From: Camelus ferus
Taxonomy: Eukaryota
NCBI RefSeq assembly: GCF_009834535.1
Contig: NC_045720.1
Location: 1,426,001 to 1,490,000, forward strand
Direction of reading: 5' to 3'
Length of the DNA stretch: 64,000 nucleotides
The notes beneath the pieces are model-generated. The model saw only the letters and a program-made list of their open reading frames with translations. It searched no databases and was not told the origin of the DNA. The translations under genes and the position numbers were made by a program. How positions within the stretch are numbered: position 1 is the first letter of the stretch; each line of letters begins with the position of its first letter. Below, piece by piece: positions 1-64,000 of this stretch.

Positions 1-414
1 GGGGCACTAGCTCCCCGCTTTGCTGCGGGGGGTGGGATCCAGGCCCGGGGTGCGGCACCAGTGCCGGGAACCGGGCGCAGGCACAGGCAGCGTGGCAGGG
101 TACAGGTGTGGGCAGTGTCTTGTTAGGTCTGTGTAAGTTCCTTCCAAGGTTGGCCACGCAGGGGCCCCGTGAAAAGGACGAGAGGGAAGCAGGCGGCTTG
201 CCCAAGGCCTCACTGCTGGGAGGCCGCAGCCGAGGTCAGAGCCCAGGCCCCTGTCCCTGAGCCCAAGGACTTCCCAGAAAGGTCTTTGCTCCCTGGGTCT
301 GTGGGAAGCGTCTTCAGAGGCTGTTCCCTGCACTTTTCTCACCCACGGGGCTCCCTTCCTGTGAAGCCATTGGCTGTTCCAACCCAAGCAAGGCCAGTGT
401 GGGCCAGGGCCAGG

Positions 415-482
415 GCCAGGCACAGTGCCCAGTGTGTAGGAGGTACATAAATATTTGTGCAGTGAGTAAATAAATGAATGAC
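415..482 (+). mobile_element. L2 LINE 3' end fragment
   Basis: cacagtgcccagtgtgtaggaggtacataaatatttgtgcagtgagtaaataaatgaatga resembles the L2 3' terminus. Confidence 0.65.
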
Positions 483-1162
483 TTCAGTGCATGGGGCCCT
501 CACTGTCTCCTGTTCAAGCAGCCCTCCCTTACCTGTCTCTTGTTTGCAGACTGAGCACATCTGCCAGGGTCCTGGTGGCAAAGGTGCCAAGGCCCAGCTG
601 GCCCACTGGCCAGGCCTCTGCAGCAGAATCAGCAAGGTGGTGCTGCCCTTGGGCAAGCCCAGCTGGCTTCTCCAGGCCTGGGGCACAGTCCTGCAGGAGC
701 CACCTGCCCCCCAGCGACACAGGCCCTCCAGGTGGCAGGCTCCAAGCTGGGCACTGCTGGCACAGGAGGCACAGGGGACCTGGTGGTGGTGTAAACAGGA
801 CAGCGTAGGGGGGAGGTGAGGTGGGGAGCTAGCCCCCTGAGGCCTGGACCTGGCAGAGAAGCACCGCCTCTGCAAGCAAGCATGGCCTTAGTGGTCCCCT
901 GCTTCCCTGTTCAGGTTGGGAGTGTGGCCCTGGAGCCACCCTGCTCCAGCCCCTACCGGTGGACCTCACTCTCTGGAGCCCTAGAAGGGTAACAAGAGGG
1001 AACAGGTGTGGCCAAACCTGTCCACGGTGCAGGCAGGCAGGTGAGAGGATGTGCTCAGTCAGGCCCATGCTGCCTGTAGAGGAGTCTTCCAGTGCTTGGC
1101 TGGAGCATCCCCAAGTTTGCAGGAGCCCCGAGGGGTGCATGGTCTTGGCCACAGGAGGGGGC

Positions 1163-1625
1163 TGCTAACCTGAAACAACAGAACAGCCAGTTAGTTTACC
1201 AGAAAAATGGGTTTATTCAGGAATAGCAAAGGATTGCAATTTGGGATACGCGGAGAATGCAACTATGGTAAATGACAAGCAAGTCTGGTAAAGCAAAGAA
1301 GAGGAAACCCTTTTGTAGAGGAGAAGGGGGAGTTGGGAGGGGCTGTTCTAAACGAACAGTCCATTGGAGGAAACTGGAGTTGGGAATCCCACGCATAGTG
1401 GCTTTTCACTGGCTGAGCTGTGACTGCCTCTCATTGGCTTGGCTGTTGCCGGGCTGGGGGAAAATCTTCCCTCCTACCCTGGTAGCAGTGTCAATTCCTG
1501 CCAGAGATGTAGAGAAGGTCTCTTCCTGCTGGGCTCCGTATTGACTGGAGGGGTATGTGCACGAGGGGTCCCCCTTCCGGCCTCCTGACTCCATCTTAGG
1601 AAGTCTCCCTTTAGTAACTTTCTCA
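1163..1625 (-). mobile_element. Solo LTR, probably ERV1 class
   Basis: TG...CA-bounded, lower-GC block; tttatt at 1212-1217 (AATAAA on -); ctcctgactccatcttag motif typical of reverse-oriented ERV1 LTRs; no clean TSD found. Confidence 0.65.
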
Positions 1626-2614
1626 GGGTGCTGGTGGTGCCGCTATGGGCGCAGGTCCACACCCACCCTCTGTGCCCGGCTTCTGGCGGCAGCTCTACCC
1701 CCACACACCCACCTTGCCAGCGGCGGGCGCTGGAGGGAGCTGGAGTCTGGAGGGCAGAGCCGTGTAGGCTCTGCATTAAACAGGATAACGGAGAGGGAAA
1801 TTCCACAGCCAGCTCTGCCCAGGGTGCACCGAAATTACCATGGCGTGTTGCTGGAACAGAACCCAAGGGCACCATCTCAGAGGGAGCCGCTCCCACACAG
1901 ACGTTCCCTGACATGCTGTCCCTGTTCACCTTGGCCCTTGCTCTGGCTGGTGAGCTCTTATTCACCCATCCTGGCCCACCTCCAGTGCCCCTCACTGGGG
2001 AGCTAGCAGTGCTTGCCACCCACTCCATGCCTCAGCCCCAACCTATGGAGGAGGGCAGGCCGGGCTGTCCCAGGTGTGCTCTGCAGGATGCTGGCAGCTG
2101 GAACACCCTTGTTTATCCGGTTCCTCGCCTTCTCTCTCCTGGATAACACCAGCTGCCCATGCTCAGGGGCACAGGCTTCCTGCATCCTGGCTCCTTGCTG
2201 CCCAAACCGGCCGGAACCGGAGTAGCCACCCCTCTCAGGGACCCAGGGTGAATTATCCCTAACCTCCATCTCCTCTTGGGGAACCCCAGCCTGAGACTTG
2301 GACCCTTCAACATGATGACAGAAAGCCGGTGTTCTCCCCGCTGCAGGGAAGTGGAAGGCTGTAGTGCTGAGGCAGGTGCCGGGCTCTGAGTGCGAAGGAA
2401 GGGAGGGAAGAGGTGAGACTGGCCAAGGGCAGCGGCCAGAGCAACTCGGGACACCAAGCTTTCTACTCGGGACACTGCAAGTCCCACCAGCCCCATCTCT
2501 CCAGCTGCCACTGAAGCCCTTTTGGAGGCTCTCTGCCCCCGAATGGGCCAGCCTTTCTTTGCTTCTCCAACACTAGCTGTGGGCCCAAAGACCAGAGCAG
2601 CTTCCGTTCTTTGT

Positions 2615-2704
2615 GGTCAGGACTAAAACTCAGCATGTGACCAAAGCCCGGACTCAGGGTGTGACCAGGGTCAGGGCTCAGCCTGTGACCAGGTCCGGAC
2701 ACAG
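2615..2704 (+). repeat. Degenerate 24-bp minisatellite (about 3.5 units), consensus GGTCAGGGCTCAGCCTGTGACCAG
   Basis: Units at 2615-2644, 2645-2668 and 2669-2692; the same unit occurs inverted at 41861-41980. Confidence 0.8.
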
Positions 2705-4181
2705 GAGTCCTCCTTGGTGTGACAGCCACAGGAACACCCCTTTCCCAGCCCCACCAGACAGTGAGGGGCCTGCGTTCAGTTCTGGGTCCTCACCACCCCT
2801 TCCCCAGCCCAGGGCTGGAGGAAGGGTAAGAAGCAGGGAGGGGAGGGAGGAAGGGGGAGGCGGGAGCAGGACTCAGCCTCCTGTTCAGGTGGAGGCCTTG
2901 AGGTTCATAGCTGTGGTCAAGGTCTTTTCCTGGAGGCTGGGATCAGGGTCCCCTAGGCTGGCAGGGTCCAGGTCAAGTATCCAGTCCAGGGCCTCACTGC
3001 TGCCTGGGTTTCCTCACTTGCCCTGCCCACCTGCGGACAGGGAGCTCCGTGTCTCCCTCTCAGCCATGCTGGCGAGTGGAGGCCAAAGCCAGGCAGAGGA
3101 GGCCATGCGTTAATTGTGGCCTTGGGTGGGAGTCCGGGCCTTAATTGGAGAACACCCAGCTTGTAAAAGAGTGAGTTTCAGGTGCCTGATTAGGTTAAGG
3201 AGGGCGGTGCCATCCTTGCGCCCCGCTCCTGGGCGGCTGGTGCCCCACAGGACTGCACAGTGCGTCACCACACTCAGTCCTTCCCGTATCACCCTGCTGG
3301 GGGAGGAAGTGCTCACAGATCCCCAAGAAGATAGACCTCAGCTGAGCAGTTGTGCCCACTGGGTGAAATCCACTTGTCTTTGCCTGTCAGAGTTCCGGGA
3401 ATTCACCCGCTTGCCTCTTGTTCTGCACTGGCTCCTCCTCTTCATTCAGGGCTCTCCCTCCTCATCCCTACTTCAAAACGCAGCCCACCTGGTGCCTTCT
3501 CCAGGCAGGGGCTGCTGGGGCTGGTAGATCAGTGCTGTGCACAGGGCCCCCAAGTGTGTCACCAGACTGACCTCTGTTAACGCAGGTCCCCTGTTCTCCT
3601 CAACCCCCAGTCTCTCGTCCCTGCACGCCTGGCACCCACTGCCCAAGCCTGGCACTGAGTGGAAATCAGCAACTCCTGAACAGACGACCATTGGTTGCCT
3701 GGGCCAGGGGGTACCCAGAGCCCCAGCCTCTCTCTCTCTCCCACAGCCTCTCTACTGCACCCACACAAGACCAAGGCCGGGTCTGGCCTCCCCCACTGGC
3801 CTCTGAGCTGGGCCTAGGGCCAGCCCACTGCCTGGAGCTCCACACACAGCACACGTCTCAGGGTCCCAGTATGGGCTCCATCTTGCCCTTCCCGCCACGT
3901 CCCCTCGAAGCGAGATCAAGGAGATTTCTCAGGTCTGGCTGAGGGCTGAGGTGGAGTTGGGAAAGGCACTCTGGCCTCAGAGTCCAGTTTCTATCTGAGG
4001 ACAGCTCCAGGCAAGGCTGGGCTTCATGCCAGGGAAGCTGGTGGCTGCTGGGCAAGGCCGAGTCACAGCCATGACCTGTGGCGGCAGGAGGTCGTCGAGC
4101 TGGGAGGGATGATGGAGTGGGAGGGGTAGAATGGAGTGAATAGTGTGGATGAAGCTGAAGGGTGTTGACTGAAGTAGAGTA

Positions 4182-4295
4182 GATGGAGTGGGTGGCATGG
4201 ATGGAGGAGAGCATATGGAGTGGGTGGGGTGGGTGGCGGGGATGGAGGAGAGCATATGGAGTGGGTGGGGTGGGTGGCGGGGATGGAGGAGAGCA
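4182..4295. repeat. 41-bp G-rich minisatellite (2 perfect units plus partials)
   Basis: gatggaggagagcatatggagtgggtggggtgggtggcggg at 4200-4240 and 4241-4281. Confidence 0.9.
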
Positions 4296-5515
4296 CAGTG
4301 CAGGGCACGGAGTGGACAGCAGGATTGTTCAGGCAGCATCCATCCCATCTCAGTTCACAGAGTCGCACCAATTTGAGAGGAAGTGATCAGAGCTCTGGTT
4401 TCTTCCCCACCCTTAGCTCTGAGGGGCTGGGGCAAATGGGAGCCCACATACCATATGGCCAAAAATACGAAAATTCTAAAAGAAGCTTTAAAAAAGTTAA
4501 AATAAAATATCATTGACAAATATACCATCTAAATAAACTGGACAGTCCGTTGTGACTTTAAGTCCCAGGCTCCTTGGCTGCACAGAGAGACCCTGGCCCC
4601 AGCCCAGGACCTGCCCCCCACCCGGCACGGCAAGGCCCCAGCGAGTGTGCAGGTGGCTCCCAGCCTGTGCACCAGCTCCACCTCCGCCCCTCCCAGCAAC
4701 CACCCAGAGCCACCTGCGCCCCCAGCGCCTGAGTCCATCCTTTGTGGGCGGATGCAGAGAGACCCCACAGGGGCCCTGGGAAAGAACCCAGCAGATACCT
4801 CTAGGGCACAGGCCAGGCCCGGACGGGGAGGGCCCGAGGCATGAGAGTCCGCCCTGGAGGCCGACGGGGAGGCCAGCTTACTCAGAGAGTGGGCGCGGTG
4901 GGACTCTCAGCAGACTGTGGCCCAGTCAGAGTTGCACCCAGAGGGTGGCTGTGGTCCTTGGGAAGGGGACTGTAGCCGCGAGGAGAGAGAGCCGCTGTGG
5001 CCCTGGGAGGGGATGAGTGGAGACACCAGGAGATAGGAGCACCCACCCCTCGGCCTCTGGAATCCCAGGCAGACCCCGATACACGAACTGGAAGCAGCCC
5101 ACTGAGCCGGCTGTTTCCTGCACCTGCCCCCACCCCCCAGGGCGCCCTTGTCACCCATGGTCCTCTAAGCCTGGCCTGAAGGCCTGATGGACAGCAATTC
5201 AGCTCCGACTGGGACGGTGGGGTGCGCCTCTGGCTCCGTCCGGCCCCGTCGGTTGGCCCCACAGCCCAGCAGAACCAGCACCCCAGGAGCTCACTCGGAA
5301 CGCGGAGTCTCAGGTCTCACCTGGGTCTCCAAGTCAGAAGCAGCATTCTACTGGAGCCCCAGGTGATGTATGTGCACACCACAGGTTGAGCCACGCTGGT
5401 CCAAAGCCAGTTTTCAGCCTGTGGTGCCTCAGTTTGGGGCCTCCCTGTCTGCCTGGCCCAAGGGAGAGGCACAGGGGAGGCGGCCGCTGAGAGCGCTCAG
5501 GAGGCCTGTGTCCCC

Positions 5516-8800: not shown

Positions 8801-10376
8801 TTCTAGAATTGTGACCTTCTGGTTCCAGCCAGTCTGGGGTCGAGTGCTTATGGTCGGCATATAGTCGTCACCCTTCACTGGGTGGGGTTCTTAGTTTCTG
8901 CAGAACAACTTGAAGGTATGTGTCAGACTGTTACCTGTGTCCCTTCAGGAGGAACCAGGAGCCATGTGACTCTTGTCCTAATTGTCCTGCTTGAGTCTGC
9001 CCTTTGGAACTCAGGGAAGCCAGCGAAGAAGCAGGGGCATGGAGAGGCTTGTGCCTGGCAGGGCCTGGCAGGGCCCCGCGGGGTCCTGCTGGTTCCACCA
9101 GAATCGCCCCTGTTACACTCTACCCACAGCAACACAACTCCTTATGTAGATTACTGAGCAGAGCAGCAACTAATGACCGTATCGCTGCCGGGTGAGAGGT
9201 AGAGACATGGCCCTGTCCGGTGTCCCGCCTGGCACTGCCCCAGGGGGTATGTCCCCAGAGGTGGCCTCCCAGGGGGAGACTGCTGCCCACCCTAGAGAGT
9301 TAGCCTTTGCTCGAGGCCCCGCAGTTGGTTGCAATGGCCTCTGGTCAAGGAACAGCCTTGATCCACTGGGAGCTGGTGGCTCTGTCTCTCTGCTTGGCCA
9401 AGGCCTCAGAGGGCCATGTCCTTCTTGGCCCTGGTGGCTCTGATGCCCCGCTCCCTAAACACTGCTCCTAACTATGCTGTCTAAAAGCGGACGTTTATGC
9501 AGCCCGCTCTCAGCGCTACTCATGACTGAACCCACTTAGCCCCCAAGCAATTGCAGAAGTTGGTTCTCTTTTTATCCACATTCTCCAGACGAGGAAGTTG
9601 AAGCACCTGAGGATGACCCTCCAGCCCTCTCTGACTTCTGGGCCAGCTGCAAATAGGAGTCCCTTTGTCAGGGTCACAGTTTCAAGCACGTTCTGAGTAG
9701 GAAGGGTGAAGGGGAGCAAGGCATGCTGAGCCAGCACTCCTGGGCTCTGAGCCGCCTGCACTGTTGTCTCAGGAGCCTGGCTCAGCCGCCCCAGTGTCCA
9801 CAGAGGAGGCCGTCCTGCCCAAGAGCCCTGCTCACCCTGAGGGGCTGCTGTCAGCCCCGCCTCCCTCTCCAGCCCCTTCCCTTCCCTTCCGGATGTGAAG
9901 CTCAAAAGGCAACTGAGGCCGCCCTGGGCCTTTTAATCCTCTAGCCACCACTTCCTCAGGCTTTTCAGTCCCAGAAAGGGACCGGGGCGAGCAGGGCCTG
10001 GCATTTCCTCTGGGCCCTGAAACCCAGAGCGGAGAAGAGCTCCCACACATCTGCCAGAGAGAAGGGGAAGAGGGGCTGGGCGTGGGGCCTCACCATCCCA
10101 AGGGCTGGCTGGCTGGGTGGCCACAGAGCACGCCGCCCATGGGCACTCGCCCCTCTCTCTACAGCCAATCCCGGCGGCATCCTGGTCATGAAGTCCTGTG
10201 CCCCGACGTGCCCCAACAGCACTGTGTCCTCCGATGGCCGGGCGCTGTCCGTCTACTGCTGTCAGGGCAGCCAGTGCAACCGTAGCGCGGCCATGGGCCT
10301 GACGGGCAGCCACGGGGCCCTGTGGATCAGCGCCTTGGCCAGCCTGTTGTGGGTGCTGCTCCAGGCTGCCTGGTGA
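5855..10376 (+). pseudogene. Ly6/uPAR family GPI-type gene with disabled exon 2 (Ly6g6g/D730001G18Rik-like by synteny)
   Basis: Exon1 5855-5906 MRPLLVFLLLAALCTVL+G|GTAAG. Exon2 7327-7401 (V)RALRGHVCCGQCSPTDRFCVITRA+A is followed by CTGAGT instead of GTGAGT; LRCHVC has become LRGHVC and the exon is only 75 nt. Exon3 10165-10376 (T)NPGGILVMKSCAPTCPNSTVSSDGRALSVYCCQGSQCNRSAAMGLTGSHGALWISALASLLWVLLQAAW* is intact. AATAAA at 11167. Confidence 0.8.
8561..9097 (-). mobile_element. Solo LTR (ERV1-like) in intron 2 of the upstream Ly6 gene
   Basis: Contains aagccaatctactgacaccggcttgtggtgaagg...catttattt...ctcaaaagctccgaactccccaatggctttcaggga and ends ggccccgcggggtcctgctggttcca, as in laurasiatherian ERV1 LTRs read in reverse. 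Confidence 0.75.
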
Positions 10377-53853: not shown

Positions 53854-56541
53854 TCACTCGTCCTTGACGACATCGCTGAGCCCACTCTCGGCCCGGAGCA
53901 GCTGGCTGCTGGCCTCATTGTAGGCAATCCAGTGCTGCAGGTCTTCCGGCAGCTCAGGGGGCTCCACCTGCAGGGGAGAGCAGGGTGAGACTCCCACAGG
54001 CCACCCGCTGCCCTGTGGATGAGCCGCATTGTGGGGAGGGGGACCCAGCCCGGTTGCTGCCCTCACACCTCTGCGCCTCTGCTCATGCTGTTCCCTCTGC
54101 CTGAATGCTGCTCCCCAGCCCCAAGGGGATGTCATCCTCCTCCCCTTCCAGGTATCCCCTCCCTGACACCCTCCCAGGCCCCTCGGTGCTTCCTCTCCCC
54201 CATCCTAGCTCTCGAGACACCACCCTGCCTTTGTTGGGCCTGTCTTCCCCAAGCCCAAGCCCTCTGCATGTCCCCAGAACCAGGGCAAAACCCTCTGAGG
54301 CCAGCAGCGGGTGGAAGGAGACCCAGAGTGACCAGAGGCCTGTGGGAACAGAATCCAGAGTAGAGTGACTGCTGGGAGAGCCCTGGGCAGGGGCTTGTCT
54401 GAGCCCCTCTCGTTTTCAGTGCACCAACGGGAGCTGGACTCCACCTCCCGGGTCAGCTCTGAGCCTGACCACCACCACTGCCAGCCCTCCTACTCAGCGA
54501 CACCTGCCACCTCCCTGCCAACCCGGCCATTTTGTGATGGGGCCAGGTGACAGGCTGGGCCAGGTGGAGGGGTCTGAGGCCCTGCAGTGGGGCTTTGGGG
54601 GCTCTCAGGGAGGAAGGAGCGTCAGGGGGGCTGGGCAGAGGTGCACAGAGCCAGGTTACTGGGCGAGTCTGGGCAGAGCTGGGCCTGGCTCTTGGACGCA
54701 TCCTCCTCCCAGCCCAGCTGTAACGACCAGAGCCAGACTTGGCTGCAGCCAAGCTCTCCCCACAAGGCCACACTGTCCATGTGGATCCCTGGGCACTGGA
54801 CTCAGCCTGCCCCACACTAAATCCCAGGTTGCATCTGGGACCCTCCCGCCCCAAGGGCTCAGGCTGGGTGACTCCTGGCCATGCCCTGGCCCTCCTATCT
54901 GTGGCTGGGTATCGTCGGGGCATCCCTGCCATGCTGTGGTATGAACCCCCTCACCTCTCATGTGGACCTCACCCATCAGCCCACACCTGACCATGTGGCA
55001 CCCTCCCCTGAGGGAAAGTGGTCTTGACTCCCTCTCCTCCATCTTTCGGTCACAGCACTCAGCTCATCAATTTAAGGCATCAGTGGCCACCTGCTGGCCT
55101 CCGGACACATGCAGGGACACACAGAGCATCTCTGGGGGTGTGGGGTGGGGAGAGACCCAGGCCCTGTGGGGGTGTTCCTGACTTAACAGAGACAGAAAAC
55201 CAGGGGGCTAAGCCTGTGGCCTGCTGTGCAGCCTCGGGCAGCTCCCATCGCCTCTCTGAGTCTCAGTTTCCCCACCTCTGATATAAAGGAAAGGCTGGCC
55301 TCTTAGATTAAGGTGAGGCTGTGTTCCTCTGCTCTGGTCCAGGGCCAGAGATGGCAGTGCCCTGCCTGAGAGCACCTATGGGTCTGGGAGTCCCTAGCTC
55401 TGGCACGGAGGCTCCAGGCACGTTTTTAGGAACCTGCTTGCAGCAGGAGTCTGCTCCAGCAGCCATCACCATGGCGGCATCCCCAGGGCCCGGCTGCCAT
55501 GCAGCAGTAGCAGGCCATGCTGTACCAGGAGGAGCAGGCCCTGGGGAAAGGCCCTGAGCCTCAGGCAGATGCTGTGGCCTTCTTCTCTCCACCTGCAAAA
55601 GGCAGAAGGGCCTGCAGCTCTCTGGGACTCAATCCCCACCCCACACCTAGGTGATGGTGACCCAGCCCCTTAGCTCTAAGCTAGGTGAAGGGAATCCCAG
55701 GTCCTTGAGAACTCCCAGAAACCTCCTGCACAGACAACCTCCCCCTCCTTCCTCCATCTTCCATTCAGAACCAAGGACCGGTGAGGCTGACTCCACACTC
55801 CGACTGAATCTGACTATGAAAAGTTGATCAGGGGACCTGGGAAGGTCCCAGTAAGAACAGCATCAGAGAAAAAGGCCCTGGGTCCAAAAGAAAGGGCTGG
55901 AGCAGTACTTAGCAGGGCAGAGGCACTTGAAGGAGGGGTAGGCACTGGGCCTTCCCAGGGCTGGGGGCAGGGATCAGGAGTCCTCCGGGTCGGGCGGAAG
56001 GAGTGAACTCGGGGCGGGGGATGCTCACCCTGCGCTTGCACAGGTGCTGCACGACGCGCTCCGGGGAGGTGCCCAGCACGTGCTGGCGAGAACGCACCAG
56101 CGCGCACACGAAGCCGTCTCGTAGACTGATGAAGCGCGCCTCCAGGTAGAAGGCGCGGTCGTCCCAGCCCAGCAAGCGGGTGCGCACCTCGAACGGCTCG
56201 AGCAGGCGCAGCGAGCGGCGGTAGCGCGCGCACGAAGCGGCCAGCACGGCGCGGGCCCCGAGAGAACGCAACGCCCCGAGCACGCCGCAGCGGGCCAGGT
56301 GCGCGGCGCGCGCCACGTCGGCCTCGCGCAGGTAGCGCGCGTTGTTCATGTGCAGCAGCAGGTCCAAGTCCGAGGGCAGCACGCGGCCCGCGAAGCTCTG
56401 CTCAGCCAGCAGGTCGCGGACGCGCGGCTGCAGCAGGCGCGCGCGCAGCACGGCGCACGGCACGCGCACCAGGTACCAGCCATCCAGCAGCGCGAAGTAG
56501 GCGAGCGCCAAAGCCAGCACCGCCACGAGCAGCCCCAGCAT
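53854..56541 (-). CDS. THEM6: Thioesterase superfamily member 6 (208 aa)
   Basis: Exons 56541-56029 (171 codons, [29 protein letters not shown]...[18 protein letters not shown]...HLCKRR|GTGAG) and 53967-53854 ([37 protein letters not shown]). Confidence 0.98.
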
Positions 56542-57000
56542 CGCGGCGGCGGCGGCGGCGGCAGCGGCGGCGGCAGCGGGCGCGGCGCGCGGCGAAGCCC
56601 TCAGCACGGGTGCCAGCTGTGCGCGCGGCGCCGGAGCCCGAGCGCTGCCACCCGCGCCCCGCGGGCCCGCCTGGGAACCCGCGAGAGCGGCGCGGCCGGA
56701 GCGAACCACCTCGCGAGGCCGGCTGAGGGGGAAAAGCGCCCGAGGTCGCTGGCGCCGCAGGCTGGAGCCCCGCCCCGCCCCCCCCCGACTCTCAGTGGTC
56801 CGTCCCATCCCCCGCCGCTAGCGCCGCTTTCGCTTTTCCCCGGGGCAGGCGGGGCACGGGGCGGCGCGCCGAGGGCCACAGCGGCCTCTGGCGGCCACGC
56901 CCCGCTCTGCAGGCGCAGGAGCTTCCCGGATCTCCCACAGCGTCGCGCCCTTGCTCGGAGCGCTAGCCGCCCTGCGCCTCTCCGTGGCTCCGGTAGAGCC
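55990..57000. promoter_or_regulatory. THEM6 CpG island/promoter with GC boxes and a candidate CTCF site
   Basis: CpG-dense; cgccccgccc at about 56770; TGGCCGCCAGAGGCCGCTG on - at 56879-56897. Confidence 0.75.
56542..56580 (-). repeat. Interrupted (GCC)n tract immediately 5' of the THEM6 ATG
   Basis: gct gcc gcc gcc gct gcc gcc gcc gcc gcc gcc gcg ATG. Confidence 0.85.
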
Positions 57001-58975: not shown

Positions 58976-59599
58976 TTAGAACAGGAGCAGCGGAGCGAGC
59001 AGCTGGAGTGCGGCGGCCCAGCCCCTGGACCCGGCCCCACCCAGGCTCCGCCCCGCCCCCAGACCCGCCTCCGGCCCCGCCCAGGATCCCAGGCGCGCCG
59101 CGCGAGGCGCACAGAGCCTGGCGGCTGCCGCTCGGCAGGTCTTCTGGCCCAGCCCGTTCGGGTTCCAGGGCTTGCGCGCGGCCCCGCACACCTTGGTCAC
59201 CGTGCCGTTGCCGTGAAGGGGTAGCCTGCGGGCGGGCCAGAACCGGGGTGGCGAAGGCGCCAGACCTCTTTGTCCGCAGTGTGAGCCCACTGTGGGTCTG
59301 AGACTCCGGTCCATAAAAAGGGGGTGATCACCCTAGTAGATGATGGCTCTGCCACAGCCCAGGGACGGAACCCGGCGACTCCTTTTCCCCCAGGTGACTC
59401 TGAGGGAGACTGAACCACTTGTTCCCAGAGTGGCTGGCTGCTCGCTGGGGCTTTTTTCTGGGTGCTGCCTGCCCTGGGGCAGGGCTTCCACAGCACTCTG
59501 TGGTGGTGGTGACGCAGGCCTGGGCCCTGAGGGTGCGTGGTGCTGTTTAGGCAGCAGGCCATTACCGGTCCAGGCACTGGGCACAGGAGGACCCCTCAC
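58976..59599 (-). pseudogene. Relic SLURP1/LYPD2-like Ly6 paralog (exons 2 and 3)
   Basis: Exon2 from 59599: cccccag|GT GAG GGG TCC TCC TGT GCC CAG TGC..., conceptual GEGSSCAQCL(fs)PVMACCLNSTTHPQ(fs)AQACVTTT. Exon3 59225-58976: cccgcag|GC TAC CCC TTC (1-nt del) -HGNGTVTKVCGAARKPWNPNGLGQ..., ending in the hydrophobic tail WAAALQLLAPLLLF*. Confidence 0.75.
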
Positions 59600-60024
59600 C
59601 TGGGGGCTATCCAGCCCCACAGCCTTTGTGGGACAGCTGGATGGGGTCCCGGCTCTGCACCCTGCAGCTGTGGGCACTTGGGCAGGAACTCTGAGTCTCT
59701 CTTGACTTAGGAAGGGCCCCTTGGGATTCCCCAGGGCCTCCTTGTCCCCACCCGGAGACCCACACTCCTCCCTGTCCATCTAGCTTGACTCCTCGCTGCA
59801 GCTGGAGTCAAGTGGTGGAGGGCGGGGGCATCCCCAGGGAGCCAAATGAGTCATCAGCCTGGGGGGAGCCAACCAACCTGAGCCCTGGAGGGGCCAGACG
59901 GATGGTCTGGCTGAGCCAGAGTCCTCAGGGGAGGGCAGCCTGGGACTGGCTGTGGCTGGGAGCTGGGGCCAGGGCAGGAGACATCCACTCAGGAGTCCTG
60001 GTTTGGGGTGGAAGGAGCCAGCTC

Positions 60025-60280
60025 TGTGACCTCAGGGCAGCTCTTCACCTCTCTGAGCCTGTTTCTACTGGGTTTGGAGCTTCCACCCTCAGCAGTTCTA
60101 ACCAGCTGTGTGATCTTGGGTAAGTTGCTTCACCTCTCTGTGCCTCAGGTTCTCCTCTTGCAGCCCTACCTCAAAGGGGGTGGTGAGGAATGGATGAATG
60201 ATGCATGGGAGGCCCACAGACAAGTGCCAGGCTCGGGCTGAGGACACGCGTGTCTGCTGTTGTTGTCACCCATTATTACA
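60025..60280 (+). mobile_element. MIR (two core copies)
   Basis: ccagctgtgtgatcttgggtaagttgcttcacctctctgtgcctcagg. Confidence 0.8.
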
Positions 60281-60289
60281 GATACAGAT

Positions 60290-60530
60290 GGGTCAGGACA
60301 GTGTCTTTCACGTGGAGGATGCTCAGCAAATGGCATCTTGAAAACAAAAACACGTCAGTCTGCCCGGAGGAGCGCCTCAACCACCACGGGGTCTCTGTTC
60401 CTTACTATGGGGAGAGAGACGTTTAAAAAGCAGTTTCCCGAAGAGAGTGTGACCCAGATGTGCAAACTCACAGTACGCACCAGCTTATTTGTGCCCAGGA
60501 AGCACCACAAAGACGGGGAAAACAGTGACA
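60290..60530 (+). mobile_element. Old L1M fragment
   Basis: aaatggcatcttgaaaacaaaaacacgtcagtc...ccttactatgg resembles the L1M 3' region. Confidence 0.45.
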
Positions 60531-61099
60531 GAGCTCATCTTAGGCTTTGAGGAGTGGGTTCTGTGCTGTCTTCTTTCTTGCCTTCCCGCAGTTTCTGAAG
60601 ATTAGACAGTGTGGCGCGAGTGAGGGACCCTGGGACACCCCTGCCCTGATGTGCTGGGTCGGGAGCGGAGAGGCTCCTGTGTTTCCTCCATCCTGGGGTG
60701 AGGGAGGGGCAGGGCCAACCCCCTCAGGCCCTCAGCTCGAGGCCGTGTGACCTCAGGGACAGCTCAGGAAGTGAGATGATGCCCCAGGTGGCAGGGTGCG
60801 GGGAGCCCCGCCAGGACGCCCGCCTCTCGGGGCCTGCCTGCTCTCTCCTCTCAGCCTGGCCCCAATAATTCAAACCTGGAGCCCAGAACAGGGTCTAGGG
60901 GCCCAGGACACCACTTCACCTCCACGAGCCACAGCCCCAAGAATGAGCATCTTGCCGCAGGCATGGCTACTGCGTGGGCTGCGAGGGCTCCGACCCCTGC
61001 TTGTCATCACCACAGTCCCTCTCTCTGGACCTTGGCTCCTGGGGAGGCCTCCCTGGCCAGCCCAGTGTTTTCAATCCTTGTCTCCTGCTTTGTTTTTTG

Positions 61100-61310
61100 A
61101 TACTGGCTCTTACCACTGGCGTGCTGCACATTTCCGTGTTTATCCTGTTCATCGGACTCCACTGTCCTGTAAGCTCTGTGGCCTAGGGGTGGTGCTAAGA
61201 TGTCAGAGGGAACAGGGAGAACTCAGCCAAGCCTGGGTGACAGCTGTTTCTGCAGTGTCTGCAACAGTGCCTGGAATGAGCAGGTGCCCTGTAACTATTT
61301 ACTAAGCGGA
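61100..61310 (+). mobile_element. L2 3' fragment
   Basis: ctccactgtcctgtaagctc...gtctgcaacagtgcctggaatgagcaggtgccctgtaactatttact. Confidence 0.6.
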
Positions 61311-62633
61311 TAGAGCACATGGTTTCCTCTGCGGTCACCCAGGCAGGGTCAGCAAGCCTGGGAGGGCAGTTTCTGGGGTCAGATCACTGCCGGAAGCCCA
61401 GTCCTGCATGCTGTCCAGTCACCAGGCCACTGCTGGCCCAAGCTCCAGCCTCAGGCCCCAGGTCCCACACCGACCCCTGACTACTGGGCCTGAAGCTCTG
61501 CCTGGGGGCCTCCAGTTCTTCACACCCTCCCAGCAAACAAAGACCCAGCTCTGGACCCTGAGCCCTGGACCGGGGTCGGGCTAGGTCTGTGTGCTGCATG
61601 TGCCCTGGGCCCCAGAGGGGCGGACACGTGAGCAGGGTGGGCTGGGCCGGAGGCCGGAGCGGGTAGGCAAGAGCACTTGTGGTGACTTGGGCACTGGTAG
61701 CGGGAACAATACCCTCCTGACATCACCACCCGGGACACTGGGCTGTGTGGGGATGGCTGGGCCCCTGGCCTGGACTCTTTGGTTAGTGTGACCCTGCCCC
61801 CACCGCTGCTGGGTTCCTGTCCCCTCCCTAGAGCTCCAGGAACAGGGCTCTAATCTTGTCTCATCCACCACCCAGTGCCTGATGTGGGCCAGAAATGTCC
61901 TGTGCAGGTCGGTGCCAACCTGGCCCAGGACTCCCAGCGCTGGCCCAGGCCCCTCCCTCCCCCCAAGGGGCGGGGCAGGCTGTGTTTTCAAAGGGGCTTT
62001 CGCAAGGATGGAAAAGGCCAGGCAGGGGCCATGTCCTCTGGGGGGTCCCCTGGACTCACAGTTAGTTACCCTAGAAGGAGCCCCAAGCAGTGTGATGGCG
62101 GCACCCTAGAGAGACGGAGCGACCTGCGGTCAGGATGGCGGCCAGCCCAACACTGGGGACCTTTTTGTACTATTTGACTGTGGAGAACTTACAACAAACA
62201 AAATAAGAAACTAAAGAAACAGACAGAGGGGTGTCCTCAAGCTGAAAGCGGAAGACAGAGCAGGTGCCCTGGGAGCCTCATGGCTTAGCAACGTCTCCCA
62301 CTAGGAAATCCCTCCACTCCTTGAAGTCTCTGGGTCAGTCCTCACAGCAGAGAGAGGTCACAGTGGGCATCTGAGGCTCTGAGAGTTTGAGAAACATGCA
62401 AGAGCCGGGAGGCCCCAGGGACGCTGCCCTGCCTCCTGCAGCGACGTCTTTCCTTCCAGGAGTCAGACGTTTGCACCTTCCCTGGGCCGGAGCTCTCCCC
62501 ATGCAGCCAAGGGCACAGCCACAGCCACAGATGTGGGCCCAGGTGATGACCCCACGCAGCCCTGGACCCCAAACCTGACCTCAGCCTGAGCGCATGCAAG
62601 GACAGGGGCTCTTTGCAGTCAAGCCAATGGACC

Positions 62634-62639
62634 TTTATT
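62634..62639 (-). terminator. PSCA poly(A) signal
   Basis: tttatt on + (CTTAATAAA on -), about 520 nt downstream of the ancestral PSCA stop. Confidence 0.7.
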
Positions 62640-63158
62640 AAGGTGTGTGCTGGGTCGCTGCTCCCCCGTGAACATGGGGAGCTGGTCCCCGCTCCGAGCT
62701 TCGTCTCTTGAGGTTCCCGGGACCTCACACCCTGGACTCCGTTTCTACTTAGAACCTTTCATCTCAGCAGGGCCCTCGTGAGAGCCTCCTCCATGCTGGG
62801 TGCAGGGGGCACGACAGGCAGGACCTGGCTTAGCTCATGGAGGGGGCAGGCGGGAAGACTTCCTGGAGGAAGAGGTGCCCGAGCGAGGGTTAAGGGGTGG
62901 GTCAGAATATTGGGCAGTGGAAACAGCTGCAGCCCAGAGCCCAAGGGTCTGACAGGCCATCTGCAGTCTGCTCCACGTCACTAGAGACCAGCCTCCTGGG
63001 CAGTAGGGGCCGGGCAGGAGTCCTGGAGGGAGCAAAGGAGAGCTGCAGAGGGCAGAGGGCCATAGCCCGACCTGAGTCAGGGTCCGGGTGTGTGTAATCA
63101 GTGCCCCAGGGACTCTGGGCACCACTGCAAGGCATGGGGCCTGCGGCCCTCCCAGATG

Positions 63159-64000
63159 CTGCAGCTGTGGGGCCCCAGAGTGGCAGCCCACTCAGAGCAG
63201 GGAGCAGCGTCAGAGTGACGGCTGCTGGCCACGGGGCGTGGCCCCACTAGCATTGCACAGGTCGGCGGAGCAGCATGTGACATTTTTCTTGCCCACGCAG
63301 TAGGCCTCTGAGTCCTCCACGCAGTGCGCGCTGCAGCCCTTGCTAATGACGGTCACGAGGCCCACGATGCTTGTGGGGGAGGGCAGAGGACTGCTAGGCT
63401 AGGGCCGGGTCCTGGAGACTCACCCACCTGGCCTTGCTCCAGCTCCCAGGGCGTCCCAACTGTCCCTACTCTAAAACTCACCCTGGATGGACATTGAGAC
63501 TGCAAGCAGAGTGAGGGCAGGGATCTGGTCTTGTCCCTGTCCACGTGTCCAGGGCACCCAGACCTGCTGGTACTAGAAGTGGGTGACGAATGAGTGGATC
63601 AGGGGTGGGTGGATGGATGGCTGATAGATGGATGGATGCATATCCATTGAGGGGATGGGTAGATGAGGGGTGGGATGGGGGATGGGCAGATGGGGGCTGA
63701 GCGCTATATCCGCGTGCGGACAGAAGAACCAGTGGGCAGGGGGACAGGCGGGCAGAAGGATGAACAGTTCAGTGGCAGAGACCTAATGCCAGATTCTTTG
63801 AGTTCCTATCAATGGAGGGAAGGCGTAGGGGGTCTAAGGGGATGGTGCTGGGGGCGGGGCAGGGTCACAGGGAGAACTGCGGGGACAGCGGGGCCACTCA
63901 CGGGTGCGCTCAGTCTGGCACTGGGTCTTGGATTGGCTGCAGTTCTGCACCTGCTGACAGTCCTTGTTGCTGATCTGGGCCTGACAGGAGCAGCACTGCA
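63159..64000 (-). pseudogene. PSCA: Prostate stem cell antigen, exons 2 (partial) and 3, with inactivating lesions
   Basis: Exon2 >64000-63902: LQCCSCQAQISNKDCQQVQNCSQSKTQCQTERT+C|GTGAGT. Exon3 from 63370: (R)IVGLVTVISKGCSAHCVEDSEAYCVGKKNVTCCSADLCNASGA. The acceptor reads cacAA; a 1-nt deletion at about 63240 gives TPRGQQPSL* (stop 63210-63212). Confidence 0.85.
63590..63700. repeat. Degenerate (GGAT)n tract in PSCA intron 2
   Basis: gggtggatggatggctgatagatggatggatg. Confidence 0.75.

Follow-up and report, generated by a model that had tools for sequence, protein, structure and literature searches.

THEM6 is a stable marker beside the SLURP1 homologs (Koludarov et al. 2023, PMC10421932). The non-mammals surveyed have LYPD2 and SLURP1 in facing orientation, with LYPD2 immediately before THEM6 (PMC10421932); lizards have kept LYPD2 upstream of THEM6 (PMC10421932), and whereas the two genes face each other across THEM6 in reptiles, they lie in tandem in mammals (PMC10421932). 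The order in human 8q24 is PSCA, LY6K, SLURP1, LYPD2 and onward (PMC6600238). Here we describe a locus of the camel, at 58976-59599 on the minus strand of the stretch analysed (hereafter the window, 64,000 nucleotides), which is probably the fossil of a gene of the SLURP1/LYPD2 branch at its ancestral position, left behind after a second copy took over and functionless now. An earlier note on this DNA had read these letters as a dead, inverted SLURP1/LYPD2-like paralog, and had raised the prospect of an undescribed gene in other mammals. The literature searched yielded no description of the relic, which is an unannotated addition to a well-known kind of gene.

Gene map of the window and position of the relic

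The DNA is that of a camel, with 99.8% identity to Camelus bactrianus (99.76% for window 63999-53000 against the chromosome). The gene map of the window was built from a scan for the CC..CN hallmark combined with the ORF listing, and comprises the following features.

10257, plus strand: Ly6-like exon 3
19807, plus strand: LY6D
31235, plus strand: LYNX1
39352, plus strand: SLURP2
45767, plus strand: LYPD2 (exon 2 at about 45105, exon 3 at about 45671)
50266, plus strand: SLURP1 (exon 2 at about 49779, exon 3 at about 50173)
53.85-56.5 kb, minus strand: THEM6
56026..56541, minus strand: first coding exon of THEM6, used as synteny anchor (ORF translation 99% identical to Camelus THEM6)
63275, minus strand: PSCA exon 3

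The relic adjoins THEM6 within the TOP1MT-linked Ly6 cluster and has PSCA on its other side, a location in keeping with the subfamily. It is read from the same strand as both flanking genes and from the strand opposite to SLURP1 and LYPD2, and 2.4 kb separate its end from the conserved THEM6 ATG downstream. The map thus confirms what had been claimed of the locus, that it lies between THEM6 and PSCA and is inverted with respect to SLURP1 and LYPD2.

Several other features of the window were recorded. The THEM6 ORF runs for 89 codons 5' of the conserved Met (56542-56808, minus strand), including a run of 12 alanines; the NCBI model of camel THEM6 uses the upstream ATG and has 293 aa, THEM6 of most mammals having 208 aa. 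The PSCA exon 3 reading (63213-63398, minus strand) gives ..CCSADLCNASGATPRGQQPSL and then stops, with no hydrophobic tail reached, and at the PSCA site the C. bactrianus record calls a product of 236 aa that has no Pfam match. An additional Ly6 exon 3 at 9945-10373 (plus strand), 5' of LY6D, reads ..CCQGSQCN.. and continues into a hydrophobic tail. A short ORF at 1058-1195 (minus strand), reading ..LFCCFRLAAPSC.., matches camel SLURP1 exon 3 with E 0.012 in the window ORF set, and may be either a chance match or an extra scrap of Ly6 exon 3 near the start of the window.

Exons of the relic and their lesions

All letters quoted in the earlier note were found where it had placed them, and the acceptor strings of camel SLURP1 and LYPD2 are exactly those it had quoted. 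The parts of the relic, in the order of its own strand, are as follows.

59490..59599, minus strand: exon 2 relic (inner end at about 59490), with acceptor cccccag, its ag at 59601-59600, followed by GTGAGG
59226..59489, minus strand: former intron 2, about 260 nt, ending in acceptor cgcag
58976..59225, minus strand: exon 3 relic, with acceptor cgcag and start GC TAC CCC TTC AC

Exon 3 carries the clearest homology. In blastn, the acceptor and the first 41-45 or so exon bases (59239-59185) are 80% identical over 56 nt to the corresponding part of LYPD2 exon 3 of Pipistrellus (E 5e-8), and the sole gap in this alignment falls at the site where a base had been described as lost, so that the reading of exon 3 with a 1-nt deletion is borne out. 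When the exon was scored against nine intact LYPD2/SLURP1 exons and compared with its dinucleotide shuffles, z was 12, none of 500 shuffles being as good; with the marsupial relics described below as targets, z was 6.9. When the window's 1778 ORFs were queried with an LYPD2 exon 3 peptide, the relic ORF was the top non-gene ORF, ranking after seven real genes (E about 0.1). Because of the match to Pipistrellus LYPD2, the shuffle test and this ranking, exon 3 is, judged from its sequence, a true Ly6 exon, above chance, and its homology (E 5e-8, z 12) supports the assignment to the SLURP1/LYPD2 branch of the Ly6/uPAR family made beforehand. The opening of the exon fits the subfamily pattern (Y/F)PF....(V)T(K/R).C, and the camel relic was also matched by tortoise exon 3 in tblastn (E 3e-4, in the 10-kb interval). 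At the DNA level the exon start shares 62-70% identity with LYPD2 (first 74 bases) and with the marsupial relics, and 53-58% with SLURP1; the camel's own LYPD2, at 62%, is not closer than the LYPD2 of other species. As for its lesions, exon 3 misses 1 base after 59213, after which the frame is open up to the TAA at 58978-58976, an open frame of 82 codons persisting. Cys7 and Cys9 have both become Arg, the Asn of the closing ..CN has become Ala, and a G/A-rich insert, inside which lies a short 12-nt repeat (59052-59082), precedes the hydrophobic tail.

Exon 2 is the more heavily decayed in its reading. Its Cys codons lie at 59585-83, 59576-74, 59553-51 and 59516-14, the first of these being a TGT that is a candidate for Cys1, with an ambiguous alignment; the position of Cys4 is taken by His (59535-33), TAA occurs in frame at 59564-59562 and at 59549-59547, and a search for a GT donor found none remaining. 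The acceptor with the first codons, cag|GT GAG G, is identical in relic and SLURP1, and N-x-T follows Cys3 in both. Taken alone, camel exon 2 gave z = 0.9 in the shuffle test, with 119 of 500 shuffles as good, which means that the three-frame reading is flexible enough to have arisen by chance. The window segment 59720-59397 is, however, orthologous to a segment of the fox (L002 6624-6931; 64% identity over 327 nt, E 3e-25) that does resemble a Ly6 exon 2 (shuffle-test z of 3.1 for intact genes and of 3.4 for the marsupial relics) and that reads ..PVEHTACLT... The putative identity of camel exon 2 is thereby rescued, and only by this orthology to a Ly6-like segment. The letters and the acceptor of the three-piece exon 2 reading proposed earlier are as quoted; the reading needs two changes of frame and, given the score of the exon on its own, is weaker than it had been made out to be.

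The former intron 2 is comparable in length to that of camel SLURP1 (about 280 nt) and LYPD2 (about 450 nt), and its acceptor and polypyrimidine end align with intron 2 of bat LYPD2. Of the three-exon layout, the acceptors of exon 2 and exon 3 match those of SLURP1 and bat LYPD2; no donor remains, and no exon 1 was identified. A candidate exon 1 put forward earlier at 60920..60950 (minus strand; MLILGAVARG, donor G|GTGAAG) was rejected: its 10 codons are too short for a signal peptide, and it has no alignment to fox by blastn at E below 1e-3, the fox blocks skipping this stretch. Scanning 59600-62900 for an ATG with a hydrophobic core and a phase-1 GT donor gave nothing convincing.

Taken together, exon 2 has two in-frame stops or, read otherwise, two frame shifts, exon 3 has lost one base, the donor is lost and CC..CN is broken, so that the stop, frame shifts, lost Cys, missing exon 2 donor and broken CC..CN for which the locus had been called dead are all present. 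Cys codons are kept for Cys2, Cys3, Cys5, Cys6, Cys8 and Cys10, with 4 of the 10 Cys positions lost or replaced, and the camel relic does not show the LU hallmark of 8-10 Cys in three-finger spacing with a closing CC-x4-CN. Protein searches do not detect the camel reading. Neither the camel exon 3 ORF nor an X-joined reading of exons 2 and 3 matches any Pfam family, even at E 10, and the UPAR_LY6 match that the earlier note had suggested as a check on its reconstruction did not appear; such failure is expected for a decayed copy, and family membership therefore rests on DNA homology and synteny. A phmmer search of the PDB with the camel reading returned chance matches only (e.g., uL4m, E 0.07). 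With the 94-aa ORF as query, neither a word-indexed search of 5.8 billion proteins nor phmmer against 1.84 billion representatives gave matches, this ORF being too decayed a query for large protein searches to work. An HMM built from the seven exon 3 peptides of the window scored the relic ORF at noise level, because the HMM is dominated by Cys that the relic has lost. At the nucleotide level, a blastn search of the window with the relic as query did not pick up camel LYPD2 or SLURP1, Rfam gave no match for the relic, and the C. bactrianus record has no gene called at its site. Camel-fox identity is 64% in the relic against 67-82% in the adjoining intergenic blocks; since the relic is not above its flanks, there is no sign of constraint. 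On these sequence grounds the relic is a pseudogene that currently has no function, and it is a non-processed one because the position of intron 2 is kept.

The PSCA-THEM6 interval in other genomes

THEM6 with 10 kb on either side was compared in ten genomes, located via THEM6 proteins and including eight mammals besides camels. No gene is called in the PSCA-THEM6 interval of camel, fox, elephant, Hipposideros or naked mole-rat, and an intact ortholog was found in none of the eight mammals sampled (fox, Tasmanian devil, brushtail possum, naked mole-rat, elephant, macaque, Pipistrellus and Hipposideros). Outside the camel, the site holds the following relics and gene, in addition to the fox segment described above.

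L005 about 2895-3010 and about 4212-4400, on the THEM6 strand and upstream of it: Tasmanian devil relic, exons 2 and 3, uncalled, SLURP1/LYPD2-like
L008 1441-1524 and 2686-2805, on the THEM6 strand and upstream of it: brushtail possum relic, exons 2 and 3, uncalled, SLURP1/LYPD2-like
L009 3817-4981 (gene call at 1-4999), plus strand, directly upstream of THEM6 (10001, plus strand): intact 125-aa gene of the tortoise Gopherus evgoodei, called with PF00021

The possum relic reads LNTAKCKNTSTCSPGHIACLTREHSVDA and YPFTGNIKSYEASQASNPDSIGQKHPQTCCYTDLCNSVNT*, and that of the devil, with shifting frames, ..PVDIAKYRSITTCPPGHTACLTREHSID.., YPFTGNIT.., TMACEDSCQTSTPDSFGSRP and TCCYSKALNQ. In Pfam the marsupial relics score 27 bits for Toxin_TOLIP (cut-off 21.2) and 24.3 bits for UPAR_LY6 (cut-off 24.8). 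At its start, exon 3 of camel, devil and possum alike has the codons TTC ACA GGC AAC (F-T-G-N), which occur in none of the intact panel genes, and in the best tree the camel, devil and possum relics form a group with support 75/84. The Gopherus gene belongs to a family named LYPD2-like in turtles, Chelonoidis among them, and a python. Homologous exons upstream of THEM6, which had been named as a check on the relic, thus turned up in fox, devil, possum and tortoise; elephant, macaque and Pipistrellus showed no recognisable relic exon, and in Hipposideros about 3.1 kb corresponding to window 61447-58332, the whole relic included, are deleted (L006 8206-8284). In the naked mole-rat, a stretch about 1.9 kb upstream of THEM6 and on its strand (L010 8100-8138, E 0.025) reads GRKHP*SCSLQDL, which resembles GQKHPQTCCYTDL of the possum and may be the last rodent trace of the relic. 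Two suppositions of the earlier note gain no support from this comparison. The prospect of an undescribed mammalian LU gene is not borne out in the eight mammals sampled, which yielded no intact copy and, in fox, devil and possum, broken relics. As for a position without a named gene, the turtle counterpart is already annotated 'LYPD2-like', and sauropsid LYPD2 stands before THEM6 (PMC10421932).

In two bats, Pipistrellus nathusii (L003 14394-14856) and Hipposideros armiger (L006 17473-17980), the first Ly6 gene downstream of THEM6 is of LYPD2 type. No SLURP1 exons were matched between THEM6 and this gene in either bat, and SLURP1 may have been lost or moved there.

The spacing of Cys codons in exon 2 bears on when the gene died.

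Cys2-Cys3: 24 nt in five intact genes, 20 nt in camel, 23 nt in fox
Cys3-Cys5: 36 nt in five intact genes, 34 nt in camel, 35 nt in fox

Both intervals are out of frame in camel and fox alike, which would fit a gene death that preceded the camel-fox split, with extra small deletions in the camel. A single deleted base common to both species was considered and set aside, the alignment being ambiguous at the level of bases; the shared frameshift rests on net lengths. In the marsupial relics the Cys3-Cys5 stretch is in frame, and this, together with their differing lesions, argues that they decayed separately from the placental copy.

Origin of the relic

The reading that we prefer, a gene that stayed where its ancestors stood and died there, starts from an amniote ancestor that would have had an LYPD2-type gene directly upstream of THEM6. 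Working copies would then have arisen in mammals beyond THEM6, and the original upstream copy would have decayed; judging from the tortoise gene, what it encoded would have been a small GPI-type three-finger protein. In neighbour, side and strand the relic corresponds to sauropsid LYPD2, as represented by the tortoise gene and the lizards of PMC10421932, and in the sampled placentals working LYPD2 and SLURP1 both lie across THEM6 from the relic. From this we infer that mammalian LYPD2 most likely stems from the locus of the relic, which would then be its parent and not an old paralog apart from it. Phylogeny, which the earlier note had also listed as a check, groups the relics in the best tree and places them with no one of the SLURP1 and LYPD2 lineages in particular: AU tests that joined the relics with SLURP1, with mammalian LYPD2 or with sauropsid LYPD2 gave p 0.24-0.42 and rejected none of them, the tree, built without sauropsid SLURP1, being a polytomy.

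A variant with a small chance of being right is that the relic represents a third, separate SLURP1/LYPD2 member of early mammals, which may be intact in some unsampled lineage (monotremes, American marsupials, xenarthrans or some Euarchontoglires); in a weaker form it says that a duplicative jump over THEM6 gave rise to mammalian LYPD2. An intact third member would, if it exists, be an undescribed mammalian LU protein. Unlikely, and nevertheless still live given the AU tests and the SLURP1-like motif of exon 2, is that the relic goes back to an inverted copy of SLURP1, alone or together with LYPD2, made across THEM6 in early mammals; it would then not be the ancestral LYPD2 locus, and the tortoise gene would share its place without descent of that position. 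The exon 2 motifs of the relics (CKNTSTCSPGHIAC in possum, ..SITTCPPGHTAC in devil, PVEHTAC in fox) are closest to CKNITRCKPEHTAC of SLURP1, and a tree uniting relics and SLURP1 is not rejected (AU test, p 0.42); the start of camel exon 3, however, shares more with LYPD2 and the marsupial relics (62-70%) than with SLURP1 (53-58%), and because the tortoise, and according to PMC10421932 the lizards, keep an intact member of this subfamily at the site and on the strand of the relic, retention is a simpler account than duplication of SLURP1.

Descent from LY6K is very unlikely. In human this gene occupies the PSCA-THEM6 interval on the strand of the relic, so that position and strand would fit, and the support is positional alone; every significant match, in a panel without LY6K sequence, is to exons of LYPD2/SLURP1 type (YPF start, TVTK.C, ..G.G). 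We give little credence, too, to a recent, camelid-specific partial copy of LYPD2 upstream of THEM6, which the data already contradict. The best single DNA match of the relic is indeed to a placental LYPD2 exon 3 (80%, 56 nt), but camel LYPD2 is no closer (62%) than others and yields no blastn match to the relic in the window, the fox has an orthologous exon 2 segment, and the marsupials have relics with F-T-G-N at the same site. It is equally hard to credit that the locus is alive, through some unconventional reading or by co-option as a regulatory element of THEM6 or as a non-coding RNA. It does lie 2.2-2.8 kb upstream of the THEM6 start, and the 82-codon frame of exon 3 is open; against this stand the stops and frame shifts of exon 2, the missing donor and exon 1, the 4 of 10 Cys lost or replaced, a conservation no better than that of the flanks, and the want of an Rfam match or a gene call in C. 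bactrianus. Finally, chance resemblance of GC-rich DNA within a Ly6 cluster, which could point to the absence of Pfam, PDB and large-database protein matches, to the noise-level score with the exon 3 HMM, to the z of 0.9 for exon 2 and to the frequency of long open frames in the window, is refuted for exon 3 by its shuffle test (z 12, 0/500) and its acceptor-including match (E 5e-8), and is opposed by the syntenic relics of three other mammals and by the intact tortoise gene, so that we dismiss it.

Under the preferred reading of an ancestral copy that decayed in place, a broken copy at the reptile-type address in camel, fox and two marsupials would be physical evidence that a copy was made and the original decayed, and its lesions could be used for dating the rearrangement of LYPD2 and SLURP1. 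For annotation, the relic is a warning that Ly6-like exons in the PSCA-THEM6 interval are not to be called as a gene; on the biology of the camel it has no evident bearing.

The camel relic was compared with its closest known counterparts. SLURP1 lies downstream of THEM6 on the opposite strand, and its exon 3 (FPFGQSPVVTR) is farther from the relic, although the fox and marsupial relics show the SLURP1-like motif P-x-H-T-A-C (..C.P.H(T/I)AC) in exon 2. Mammalian LYPD2 is the closest intact mammalian relative of relic exon 3, sharing the YPF start, TVTK.C and ..G.G. It differs in being functional and in its place, beyond SLURP1 across THEM6 and on the opposite strand where the relic is upstream of THEM6; its GD(S/A/V)T is GN(G/I)T in the relics, and exon 2 of the relic is not LYPD2-like in detail. 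The marsupial relics occupy the same site and strand and are likewise broken, but they are far better preserved, and their lesions are unlike those of the camel, exon 3 being incomplete in the possum, whose Cys1-Cys2 region is also gone, and the frame being shifted in the devil. The turtle gene, in turn, is intact, with ten Cys, CC..CN and a GPI-type tail, whereas the camel copy has stops, frame shifts and Cys losses and is without a donor or an exon 1. The start of tortoise exon 3, YPFFGNITVSKSC, is 42% identical over 26 residues to the camel YPF(T)GNGTVTKVC, and the tortoise LYPD2-like gene shares with the camel relic its site, its strand and its layout of exon 2 and exon 3.
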